A stretch of DNA of 64,000 nucleotides from the NCBI RefSeq assembly GCF_006345805.1, contig NW_021833279.1, positions 13,142-77,141 of the forward strand. Reading direction: 5' to 3'. The position numbers were made by a program, and so were the translations under genes. Positions 7,687-60,840 of this stretch are shown piece after piece. The notes below the pieces were generated by a model. That model was not told the origin of the DNA. It made no database searches and saw nothing but the letters and a program-made list of their open reading frames with translations. The stretch is from Octopus sinensis. Lineage: Eukaryota. Positions within the stretch are counted from its first letter, which is position 1. Every line of letters begins with the position of its first letter.

Positions 7687-8174
7687 GTGTGGTTGGTGGA
7701 CAACATTATACCCAAACTGGAGGCGGAAGTAATCTCTTGTGTCTACCTAACGACCCCATTTGGGCCAATTATACGACAGAAGTTGAAAAAGGTGGTTACA
7801 TTTATGGCAGTGAATATCAATTAGATTTATACCCAACTAATAAACTCTTTTCTTTTGCTAACGCTGAATCAATTCATGACCACAACATTCCGTGCGCTGT
7901 CTGTTTGACACGACAACCTGCTGTTGTTATGATGTTACCAGCCAGAACAAAGTGTTACGCTGGTTGGACAGCTGAGTATTCGGGATATTTGATGACCGAG
8001 CATAACGGACATAAGAGCAGACTTGAATATGTGTGTGTGGATTATGCACCAGAAGCTGATCCAGCAGGTTACAGAAACGAAGACGGAGCTGTATTATATT
8101 TCGTTCAGGCTGCTTGTGGTTCATTGCCATGTCCACCGTATGTCAATGGTCGAGAATTAACCTGCGTTGTGTAG
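7687..8174 (+). CDS. Exon 4, copy A: short-chain collagen C4-like C-terminal domain
   Basis: Acceptor ttctag|GT GTG GTT GGT GGA. Family motifs [71 protein letters not shown] follows the stop. Confidence 0.85.
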
Positions 8175-9844
8175 TAAATACTGAATAAAATTACATTCGT
8201 TTCTATATGAAAATTTATGTTTGCGAATTATAAAAATATATATATAAAGCAACATATACGTTTCTTGTAATTGTGTTTCGCAATATTTTATCCGACTATA
8301 TATGTCGTAAATAAATTGCTGCTACAAGTTTTCAGAAATATTCAAAACGAAACAACAGAGACGTCATAGAATGTGACAATAGTTTAAGAGAACGATGTAA
8401 TCCCCAGGGAATGATTCTAAATACATTGTATGAGGTTCAGTTTATCCAAATTTAAATACTGAATAAAAATGATGATTCGTTTAAATGTGTGTTGTATCCG
8501 TCTTAAATGAAACAAACCCCAAATGAAACACCTCAGTACAATATATCACCCTTTCATGATCAATCTTCAAAAAACACGGTAAAAGCTTATAACTAACATC
8601 ACTAAATCATGATGGGTTAATAAAAAAATACTCCCATACGTATCATTGTAACTACAATCGATGCGATGAAATCTCTGCAATCCAATTGCGAATATTACCA
8701 AATAAAGGATATTTGATATCCACTGAAGAAATACCACAAAATGTTGACTATCTAACTACTAGTCAGGTACTAACACATTGAAGTTTTCACGAAACTTTCG
8801 ACAAGAGTACAAGTACATGTCCCACACGATTAACTATTTTCAACCTACATTCACATCTTCCCGCTTTCTTCTACAAAATCACACACACACACACCCTCGC
8901 GTCACATTACACACGCAGCCTCTCATCGTTTTCCTGAAAACTGATGTGCCAAAATAAAATATGAAACCACCAAGAATATGAGTAGACTTCAGAACAGAAT
9001 CAACCGAATCTACAGCAACACCCCACAAAACATCAAGTTCAACAAATTATCTCCGTCTGTAACATAAACTATCAAACTCGCAGAAGAGGAACTTGCTTCC
9101 GAGATACATGCATACAATAACTGTAACACACATAACACTTAGTAAGGAAAGGAAGACGACTTATAAAATATACATTAGGTGGAATCAGTGCAACATGTTG
9201 AGTCTTTCACACTCTACCCAGCATGATTGCTCCTTGTATGTGGGAGTTTGTAGAATGGCTGCCAGATAAACGAAGGTATCCGTGGAAAGAGGGATCTGTG
9301 GGTGGCAGCAGCGTTTTGTCCGATTAATTGCGTGCCATAAGAATGCTCGATTGTGAAAGGCTAGAGAAAAAGAATAATAATTAAGTAATATGAAAGCACG
9401 AAATGCAAACTGACATGAATATATGGAAACATTCACATGGCGTTTCCAGTGAACAGTATTAGCGCTCAGTATTAGGCATAGCAATTTTTAGTTCGTTAAA
9501 ATGTGCGCTAATGGCATATTTCAAACTCTAAGGCAAATTCAGTGCAAAAAGCTACAAATAGAGCATATTAGTGCAGTGCTGCTCCCTATCGGGTTCCAGT
9601 TCAGCCGTTATCAAAAGAAAATACCGAAGAGGGGAATATCTGGACAAACTTAAGGCCATAGCTTTAACTTAAACATAGTCAACAACAACGAGTAAGTTAG
9701 GCCATTAGAGCGCCAGGCTGGAGTCTGTCGTGAGTTACCTCCCTTCGGTATTTCTCTTTCATAAATTCTTCGCTAGAGGAGTTGACTTCAACCTTGTGCC
9801 CCAACAGTAACTGTGGTCGCTCGTACGTTCCCGCATTTTCCCGC

Positions 9845-60500: not shown

Positions 60501-60840
60501 CTTTTCTTTTGCTAACGCTGAATCAATTCATGATCACAACGTTCCGTGTGCTGTCTGTTTGACACGACAACCTGCTGTTGTTATGATGTTACCAGCCAGG
60601 ACAAAGTGTTACGCTGGTTGGACAGCTGAGTATTCGGGATATTTGATGACCGCGCATTATAATCATAAAGGAAGACAAGAATATGTGTGTGTGGATTATG
60701 CACCAGAAGCTGATCCAGCAGGTTACAGAAACGAAGATGGAGCTCTATTATATTTCGTTCAGGCTGCTTGTGGTTCATTGCCATGTCCACCGTATGTCAA
60801 TGGTCAAGAATTAACCTGCGTTGTTTGCAGTAAATATTGA
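48406..60840 (+). CDS. Copy E, best gene model: ~256-aa type II membrane-anchored, collagen-less spongin NC1-like protein; exons 48406-48551, 53270-53321, 56055-56129, 60344-60840
   Basis: Intron phases 0/1/1 join the exons in frame: ...KMEEKSKT|[17 protein letters not shown]|[26 protein letters not shown]|VVGGQ...CSKY. The only defect is TTTGGGTT where copies B and D have TTTGGGGTT (1 G missing) in exon 1. Confidence 0.7.
49076..49490 (-). mobile_element. SINE family 1, near full length (unit E)
   Basis: Collinear with 36838-37270. Confidence 0.7.
49617..49797. repeat. Imperfect ~180 bp palindrome (arms ~85 bp, loop ~12 nt)
   Basis: AATTATAATGAGGGTTTTT...GTCAAAGGGCTACCATTCTA pairs with TAGAAATGGTAGGCCTTTGAC...AAAAACCCTTATTATAATT. 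Confidence 0.88.
50892..51176 (+). mobile_element. tRNA-head SINE family 2 (unit E)
   Basis: Collinear with 38618-38898. Confidence 0.7.
52611..53218 (-). mobile_element. Helitron remnant, unit E, with canonical 3' end
   Basis: Minus strand ends CCCCTGCAATGCCGGG-tatgactg-CTAG|T, a subterminal hairpin followed by CTAG, and carries RepHel-like coding remnants. Confidence 0.78.
53270..53321 (+). CDS. Exon 2, copy E (stalk)
   Basis: ttttcacag|AACCGT...CCAA|gtaag, 52 nt, phase 0 to 1; same boundaries in B, C and D. Confidence 0.7.
53510..55380 (-). mobile_element. Decayed RTE-clade LINE, unit E
   Basis: LLFVDDMLL in ORF 53506-54060 and MSAQVRLG in ORF 55052-55249. Keeps ~120 bp (53574-53697) that is absent from units A-D. 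Confidence 0.8.
56055..56129 (+). CDS. Exon 3, copy E (start of NC1-like domain, YTRWGRTTC motif)
   Basis: ttcgcag|AA CCC...GAC G|gttag, 75 nt. YxRWGxxxC is the typical N-terminal motif of this domain family. Confidence 0.85.
57330..58930 (+). mobile_element. 5'-truncated Penelope-like element (RT C-terminal half + GIY-YIG endonuclease) in intron 3 of copy E
   Basis: [11 protein letters not shown] motif at 57357-57368; [21 protein letters not shown]; IYQC...FYIGST...RISIH; [13 protein letters not shown]; CLLC..CKH terminus with stop at 58602-04. Frameshifted. Confidence 0.85.
59182..60097. repeat. Long inverted repeat (foldback): arms 59182-59422 and 59847-60097
   Basis: Arms align in reverse complement over ~240 bp, e.g. 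GTATAATTATACCTAAAATCTCCAAGAA / TTCTTGGAGATTTTAGGTATAATTATAC; ~424 bp spacer. Confidence 0.9.
60344..60840 (+). CDS. Exon 4, copy E: short-chain collagen C4-like C-terminal domain
   Basis: Acceptor ttttag|GT GTG. Open frame of 164 codons ending CVVCSKY-TGA. Confidence 0.88.

Follow-up and report, generated by a model that had tools for sequence, protein, structure and literature searches.

Hypervariable loops on a conserved NC1-like scaffold in a tandem array of collagen-less spongin-family genes from Octopus sinensis

Organisation of the locus

The 64,000-nt stretch of Octopus sinensis DNA analysed here, referred to as the window, is animal DNA in character and rich in microsatellites, and it carries a tandem series of genes for proteins of the short-chain collagen C4-like family. 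Five gene units, named A to E in 5' to 3' order, are recognised by their fourth exons, each of which encodes most of a cysteine-rich domain resembling the NC1 domain of collagen IV, with a conserved scaffold and five short, highly variable patches. An earlier note on this DNA, made from the letters alone, had described five tandem copies of an "exon 4", and searches with exon-4 translations (tblastn) bear this out: there are exactly five copies in the window, all on the + strand, with matches beginning at 7689, 20520, ~32989, 45059 and 60346 (the true exon starts lie two bases upstream, owing to the splice phase) and spaced 12.1-15.3 kb apart. The exon number was also right, since full-length octopus relatives of ~255 amino acids align to four exons in each 12-15 kb unit. 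The N-terminus and a hydrophobic segment come from exon 1, a short linker from exon 2, the first strands and first conserved cysteine of the NC1-like domain from exon 3, and the remainder of that domain from exon 4 (Table 1).

To the O. sinensis and Octopus vulgaris loci with which it was compared, the window shows 88-94% identity, and to Octopus bimaculoides ~80%. The nearest annotated relative of gene B exon 4 is O. sinensis XP_036366825.1, with 94.5% identity and identical patch residues; no annotated protein is more than 94.5% identical to any of the window copies.

Table 1. Exons, patches and flanks of gene units A to E (p1 to p5, patches 1 to 5)
Feature	Position	Strand	Remarks
Gene A exon 2			undetectable; flanking homology alone left, 1978-2035
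Gene A exon 3 remnant	4589..4659	+	several 1-2 bp deletions relative to other copies
Gene A exon 4 (NC1-like domain)	7687..8174	+	2-bp deletion near 3' end
Patches in gene A exon 4	p1 7701-7715, p2 7779-7799, p3 7818-7838, p4 7998-8024, p5 8073-8093		
Invariant block in gene A exon 4	7905-7997		
Gene B exon 1 (N-terminus and hydrophobic anchor)	10839..10981	+	A5->A4 deletion, frameshift near 3' end
Gene B exon 2	15342..15393	+	
Gene B exon 3 (first part of NC1-like domain, with its first conserved Cys)	18849..18923	+	
Gene B exon 4	20518..21017	+	in-frame TAA; Val for invariant Glu
Gene C exon 1			missing; homology to exon-1 region of other units ends at ~25588
Gene C exon 2	27150..27201	+	
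Gene C exon 3	31199..31273	+	
Gene C exon 4	~32987..33470	+	at least 5 indels
Gene D exon 1	36190..36330	+	ATG kept; 2-bp deletion at codon 6, 1-bp deletion near donor site
Gene D exon 2	40628..40677	+	2-bp deletion within (AC)n run
Gene D exon 3	43338..43410	+	two 1-bp deletions
Gene D exon 4	45057..45559	+	open frame, every family-invariant residue kept, one in-frame extra codon (SNN)
Gene E exon 1	48406..48551	+	G4->G3 deletion (frameshift) and 3-bp in-frame insertion
Gene E exon 2	53270..53321	+	intact
Gene E exon 3	56055..56129	+	intact
Gene E exon 4	60344..60840	+	intact
3' flanks of exon 4 compared (A to E)	8175-8900, 21018-21750, 33471-34200, 45560-46300, 60841-61550		

State of the gene copies

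The earlier note had not seen that the copies carry lesions. In copy A the deletion in exon 4 causes the frame to end in TCVV-stop, with loss of the last conserved cysteine, and of the exons upstream, exon 3 is degraded by several indels and exon 2 is undetectable. Copy B has a TAA stop codon at 20925-20927, a position occupied by Leu in all relatives, and a Val in place of the family-invariant Glu of the GSEY motif, together with its 1-bp deletion in exon 1. Copy C is a clear pseudogene: the exon-1 region is deleted, and the indels of exon 4 comprise frameshifts and a 3-bp loss that removes a conserved cysteine. Copy D has five frameshifting deletions in exons 1-3 (two of 2 bp and three of 1 bp) and a flawless exon 4. 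In copy E the G4->G3 change in exon 1 is the sole disabling lesion; this could be an assembly error, and E would then possibly be intact. Copies A to D count as pseudogenes irrespective of assembly quality, so that the window has at least four broken copies out of five. This contrasts with about 15 copies from O. sinensis and O. vulgaris in which all four exons are intact.

Might all five copies nevertheless be functional, their lesions an artefact of a noisy long-read assembly? Many of the lesions are indeed 1-bp homopolymer deletions (A5->A4 in B exon 1, G4->G3 in E exon 1, C3->C2 in D exon 3), and exon 4 is perfect in both D and E. However, the stop codon in B is of the substitution type and is accompanied by the loss of an invariant Glu, A and D have 2-bp deletions outside homopolymers, C lacks exon 1 entirely in addition to the 3-bp loss of its cysteine, and comparable homopolymers in exon 4 are free of errors. 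We regard wholesale artefact as very improbable.

The lesions are unevenly distributed. Per unit length, exons 1-3 have 4.5 times as many frame-breaking indels as exon 4 (p = 0.002, or p = 2e-5 if copy C is left out), whereas homopolymer density differs only 2.3-fold between the two; copy D, with five indels within ~270 bp of exons 1-3 and a perfect 500-bp exon 4, is an example. Conversion may have repaired exon 4, or the exon may remain in use. In NCBI gene models exons are linked across units: the gene for P0008 covers 86 kb, and isoforms P0023 and P0154 differ in exons 1-2 only. O. sinensis P0008 itself (L001 95509-96003), the annotated relative of copy B, has changes at two otherwise invariant scaffold positions (CLTRQ->CSTRQ and VMML->VMTL) and may be decaying too.

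Protein family and architecture

Database searches (phmmer) with the exon-4 product return, at E-values down to 2e-95, proteins of O. sinensis, O. vulgaris, O. bimaculoides and Argonauta that bear the name short-chain collagen C4-like, and remoter homologues from bivalves, annelids, amphioxus and octocorals at E ~1e-41, with 93-100% of the query covered. The spongin short-chain collagens, or short-chain collagen C4 proteins (Exposito 1991; Aouacheria 2006; both summarised in PMC5395295), have a characteristic signature of ten conserved cysteines, seven common to collagen IV and three specific to spongins, and no HSQ motif (Fidler et al. 2017, PMC5395295). Ten cysteines are found downstream of the sequence YTRWG in 24 of 28 octopus proteins, and the HSQ motif in none of the 28. 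In an alignment of 84 sequences the cysteine columns are invariant or nearly so; one cysteine has been lost in window copy A and one in copy C. Judged by their sequences, the window genes thus belong to the spongin "short-chain collagen C4-like" family, as their NCBI names imply, albeit with a changed architecture.

The octopus proteins share with spongin short-chain collagens a C-terminal NC1-like domain that can be aligned across phyla, but lack the Gly-X-Y segment. No Gly-X-Y run beyond chance runs of at most three triplets is present in the cephalopod members, runs of seven occurring in cnidarian matches only, and none is encoded by exons 1-3 of the window. In further contrast to a plain secreted spongin collagen chain, a hydrophobic stretch, modelled as a long helix, occupies residues 14-33, after an N-terminal segment of 13 residues; this stretch may act as a signal anchor or else be a signal that is not cleaved. 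An NYT sequon is conserved in octopus members. The overall architecture is a predicted N-terminal hydrophobic anchor, a short linker without a collagen helix, and a ten-cysteine NC1-like ectodomain encoded mostly by exon 4.

An AlphaFold2 model of O. vulgaris P0006 has a long N-terminal helix followed by a β-rich domain, with a predicted local distance difference test score (pLDDT) of 84.9; a model of the ectodomain encoded by exons 3 and 4 of gene E has a pLDDT of 90.2 and a predicted template modelling (TM) score of 0.86. The octopus proteins look like membrane-anchored ectodomains. When compared with the Protein Data Bank (PDB) by Foldseek, the top 23-25 matches are all collagen IV NC1 domains, at E-values from 9e-6 and a probability of ~1, but with TM-scores of only 0.2-0.28 and a root mean square deviation of ~18 Å.

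No structures other than collagen IV NC1 domains (PDB 1LI1, 1M3D, 1T60, 5NAX and 8TYS) match significantly (Foldseek E ~1e-5 to 1e-3), and the octopus domain as modelled resembles them in its two-repeat, β-rich, disulfide-bonded architecture. The octopus domain differs from them in that it has no match to Pfam C4 or, by hidden Markov model, to NC1 sequences: a Pfam scan of exon 4 finds no family even at E <= 10, and family profiles searched against PDB sequences return noise alone, with no NC1 chain at E <= 10. Unlike collagen IV, the octopus proteins have neither a long triple helix nor the HSQ motif; the domain-swap region of collagen IV NC1 is reported to be absent in spongins (PMC5395295). 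The proposal in the earlier note of a family built on the spongin short-chain collagen/collagen IV NC1 fold is thus upheld as regards spongin family membership, whereas the modelled relationship to collagen IV NC1 is one of fold and is only partly verified. The same note had suggested that the family may be undescribed. We found no paper on a cephalopod expansion of spongin-type NC1 proteins, but the genes are already annotated.

Stand-alone NC1 proteins of ctenophores likewise combine an NC1-type domain with the absence of a collagenous tail, although these are of the collagen IV type and have signal peptides (PMC5395295). Collagen-less NC1 was called unique to ctenophores in that study; going by the sequences matched here, such proteins are not so confined, being common in molluscs and present among other matches. 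Spongin-type examples are common in bivalves (P0049, P0056, P0071, P0080, P0082, P0087 and P0115), where a signal peptide and probable coiled coil, or a membrane anchor, replaces Gly-X-Y. Three metagenome-derived homologues of 157-170 amino acids, P0084, P0104 and P0110, belong to large clusters (58-324 members) and begin just where the exon-4 boundary falls in octopus; they probably represent single exons called as genes on eukaryotic DNA from environmental samples.

A peptide of this family has been detected in the ink proteome of O. vulgaris (PMC10142993), the sole mention from octopus that we found in the literature. Together with short Logan contigs, it gives an indirect sign that some paralogues are expressed.

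Variable loops

The patch sequences quoted for copies A to E in the earlier note are all present as written, and the block of 31 residues that it gave as identical in A, B and E is so, with 1, 1 and 0 nucleotide differences in 93 nt. Its broader observation, of a conserved disulfide-rich scaffold interrupted by a few highly variable patches, holds too for intact paralogues from three species of octopus. For this analysis the patches comprise 35 codons, defined post hoc from the window copies; a held-out set consisted of 14 copies outside the window, drawn from assemblies of O. sinensis, O. vulgaris and O. bimaculoides.

Among copies A, B, D and E, 23 of the 36 variable codons fall within the 35 patch codons (hypergeometric p = 7e-11, the patches being defined post hoc). 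A test independent of the patch definition gives 13 adjacent variable codons, compared with 7.6 +/- 2.2 expected (p = 0.014). Per-codon variability in the window correlates with that in the held-out copies (Spearman 0.59, p = 7e-17), for which the median nonsynonymous divergence (dN) is 0.365 in the patches and 0.048 in the scaffold. The hypervariability is thus reproducible across three octopus species. The 56 distinct exon-4 domains in the sampled annotation (32 from O. sinensis, 15 from O. vulgaris and 9 from O. bimaculoides) carry 53 distinct five-patch combinations, with 42, 38, 41, 43 and 23 variants of patches 1 to 5, respectively.

In the structural models all five patches lie in predicted inter-strand loops, with patches 1 and 4, and likewise patches 2 and 5, occupying corresponding sites in the two C4 repeats. 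In relatives from outside octopuses, too, these regions are the more variable ones, though less sharply so (entropy 2.25 compared with 1.44; Spearman 0.47).

Mosaic evolution of the array

The pairwise homoplasy index (PHI) test detects significant recombination between paralogues (p = 0.0005). Two deeply diverged types, {A,C,D} and {B,E}, can be told apart in the 3' flanks of exon 4; the Kimura two-parameter distance is ~0.5 between them and 0.055-0.08 within each, whereas exon 4 divergence is ~0.09 regardless of flank type. Beyond the B/E-type flank lies a (TGTA)n array (22971-23820 and 62795-63327). Across 17 copies, the mean pairwise nucleotide difference is 0.29 in the patches (0.32 at third positions) compared with 0.09 at scaffold third positions, 0.11 in the proximal intron and 0.16-0.20 in the 3' flank.

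Distances at different patches are uncorrelated (Mantel r 0-0.19), and identical loop variants recur in otherwise different paralogues. Exon 4 of window copy E differs from its closest O. sinensis copy (47286) by wholesale replacement of patches 1 and 4, silent positions included, the remainder differing by ~3%. In pseudogene B the changes relative to its closest copy are scattered, and eight of nine replacements lie outside the patches. Seven reciprocal-best pairs link O. sinensis with O. vulgaris; in four of them the patches differ at 0-1 of ~35 residues, and in the other three at 3-9. The general statement that strict orthologues keep their patches was rejected as it stood, since pairs chosen by scaffold identity alone give a pooled patch/scaffold ratio of 2.8, patches being conserved in four of the seven. 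In the cross-species pairs with conserved patches, which were chosen post hoc, only 1 of 12 differences lies in a patch (p = 0.02 against the neutral expectation).

These observations bear on whether the patches are simply unconstrained loops, whose diversity arises from relaxed constraint and pseudogene decay and has no functional meaning. The greater variability of the same regions outside octopuses, the pseudogene status of the window copies and a ratio of nonsynonymous to synonymous rates in the patches that is near neutral (0.70, see below) are all as such an explanation would have it. Neutral loops cannot, however, out-diverge the non-coding DNA that flanks them, silent sites included (0.29-0.32 compared with 0.11-0.20); the loops are more diverged than this neighbouring DNA, and plain relaxed constraint is therefore insufficient. 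Nor does it account for the scattered decay visible in pseudogene B, for the replacement of whole loops at once, or for the several cross-species pairs that keep identical patches, and we consider it improbable.

The window represents part of an extensive tandem array in octopus, and with slightly better than even confidence we favour the view that the genes of this array carry long-lived loop cassettes on a conserved, homogenised scaffold. Strong purifying selection would act on the scaffold of β-strands and disulfides, and the five inter-strand loops would bear paralogue-specific sequences. Recombination or gene conversion among paralogues would keep the scaffold and proximal flanks similar, while the loop segments, as old sequences, would remain deeply diverged and would now and then be swapped as whole cassettes. 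The divergence of the loops is open to either of two explanations, namely selection that preserves loop diversity or conversion tracts that halt at diverged segments.

Mosaic multigene families of this general kind include the peptide-binding regions of the major histocompatibility complex (MHC), the leucine-rich repeats of plant resistance genes and the clustered protocadherins. By analogy, the octopus genes resemble these in having tandem arrays, a conserved framework, variable segments that have diverged despite gene conversion, and raised synonymous divergence around the variable sites. They differ in that the fold is unrelated and a ratio of nonsynonymous to synonymous substitution (omega) above 1 is not established.

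Selection on the loops

Several points weigh against the view that the array consists of old cassettes on a homogenised scaffold. When a single synonymous rate is assumed, the site model M2a is preferred to M1a by 2ΔlnL (twice the difference in log-likelihood) = 106, with omega = 5.3 at 7.7% of sites, and seven of the eight selected sites lie in patches, so that real positive selection may be at work. In the held-out set, patch dN exceeds scaffold synonymous divergence (dS) in 99% of pairs, being 2.2 times scaffold dS, and it is also above the divergence of nearby non-coding DNA. The codon models were our own implementation, run on a fixed neighbour-joining tree. Gene conversion is deduced from its signatures, with no donor tract mapped; membrane topology is a prediction only; the Foldseek TM-scores to NC1 are low (0.2-0.28); and some of the 1-bp lesions may be assembly errors.

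Recombination is known to inflate site-model tests and to give false positives. Over the whole of exon 4, pairwise omega is 0.3-0.8. At codons for the same amino acid, synonymous divergence is 0.34 in the patches compared with 0.13 in distant scaffold. A partitioned codon model gives the patches a synonymous rate 2.9 times that of the scaffold, and with this allowed for, the ratio of nonsynonymous to synonymous rates (β/α) is 0.70 in the patches (p = 0.04 for a value below 1) and 0.29 in the scaffold. Patch 2 alone has β/α = 1.7, which is not significant. The M2a signal is confounded, because recombination is significant and the patch synonymous rate is raised about 3-fold. Hence, although M2a does favour a selected class, the dN/dS above 1 that the earlier note looked for in the patches is not seen in the held-out copies once the patches have their own synonymous rate, and positive selection on the loops is not established.

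The earlier note had suggested a diversifying ligand-recognition repertoire, receptor- or lectin-like, whose loop patches have been driven apart by positive selection. The M2a result, the excess of patch dN over both scaffold dS and neighbouring non-coding divergence, and the β/α of patch 2, not significant as it is, would fit such a repertoire, as would the 53 patch combinations in 56 domains and the predicted membrane anchor with its conserved NYT sequon. Set against these are the patch β/α of 0.70 under a separate synonymous rate, the roughly 3-fold elevation of patch synonymous divergence itself, the significant recombination, and the death of at least four of the five window copies. The four O. 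sinensis/O. vulgaris pairs with 0-1 patch differences imply, moreover, that change has been episodic rather than an ongoing arms race. We judge a repertoire driven by positive selection to be unlikely, though it deserves real weight.

Possible functions and significance

Most probably the loops would serve as the specificity-determining surface of a putative recognition or assembly module, either at the cell surface or shed from it. Candidate mechanisms are the binding of non-self or of ligands, and the choice of partners in oligomers, as for collagen IV NC1.

The second of these may be taken further, with the loops as an assembly code that sets which paralogues oligomerise with which, homotypically or heterotypically. 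The NC1 domain of collagen IV has been described as a module of recognition, by which chains are chosen for trimerisation and for assembly into networks (PMC5395295), and it also governs how protomers join. NC1 domains are the only structural relatives found for the octopus proteins, the patches lie in equivalent loops of two C4 repeats, and patch sets are conserved in four cross-species pairs while differing between paralogues. Yet the octopus members have no collagen helix, which NC1 normally nucleates, and their TM-scores to NC1 are low; a literature search on collagen IV chain selection by hypervariable regions found nothing usable. An assembly code appears to us decidedly doubtful.

A bolder proposal is that in octopuses a spongin NC1 module has been turned into a large membrane-anchored, collagen-less recognition repertoire, whose cassettes retain their diversity in the face of concerted evolution and are reshuffled through gene conversion, with exon 4 units perhaps serving as alternative terminal exons that are spliced from the 5' exons of neighbouring units. 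Such use of exon 4 would explain why it is intact where its own exons 1-3 are broken, and also why annotated models join exons across units. We offer this as speculation and think it quite unlikely; if true, cephalopods would have, beside the protocadherin expansion, a combinatorial code at the cell surface of a kind not seen before.

The literature treats spongin-type NC1 proteins as minor matrix relatives of collagen IV. The octopus arrays, unlike spongin short-chain collagens, comprise dozens of tandem paralogues that differ almost only in five loops. Should these loops set binding or assembly specificity, they would define a new family of recognition proteins in an animal already noted for unusual expansions of its gene families, and would provide a natural system for the joint shaping of a multigene family by gene conversion and selection. 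The codon analyses carry a lesson of their own, that positive selection detected by site models can vanish once variation in synonymous rate is allowed.

Other features of the window

Imperfect (TG)n arrays of 540-760 bp lie 0.4-0.5 kb upstream of exon 1, one per repeat unit (9846-10412 in unit B, then 24954-25494, 35151-35773 and 47232-47987). The array is retained in unit C, though exon 1 of C has been deleted. Intron 2 of unit C contains remnants of a Mos1/mariner transposase (Pfam HTH_48 and Transposase_1; 28035-28843, + strand), and a similar fragment is present in unit A (5316-5667).

Intron 3 of unit E is interrupted by an AT-rich insertion (GC 0.28) at ~57400-59100, which lengthens the unit by ~3 kb. 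Pfam searches with the open reading frames (ORFs) of this insertion, and with those repeated in every unit, gave no match, and Rfam and tRNA scans of the window likewise gave none. Of the ORFs of the insertion (57526-57936 and 58066-58371), one has a YIGST-like motif, which may indicate a GIY-YIG (Penelope-like) element.

Finally, a recurrent ORF of 120-184 amino acids lies on the - strand in intron 2 of every unit (15645-16007, 27409-27780, 40886-41287 and 53506-54060). Near these ORFs, segments of the + strand, such as 54213-54326, correspond to the odd 5' exons (MPFRGLQ...) that some NCBI models include, but in the window they are interrupted by stop codons.

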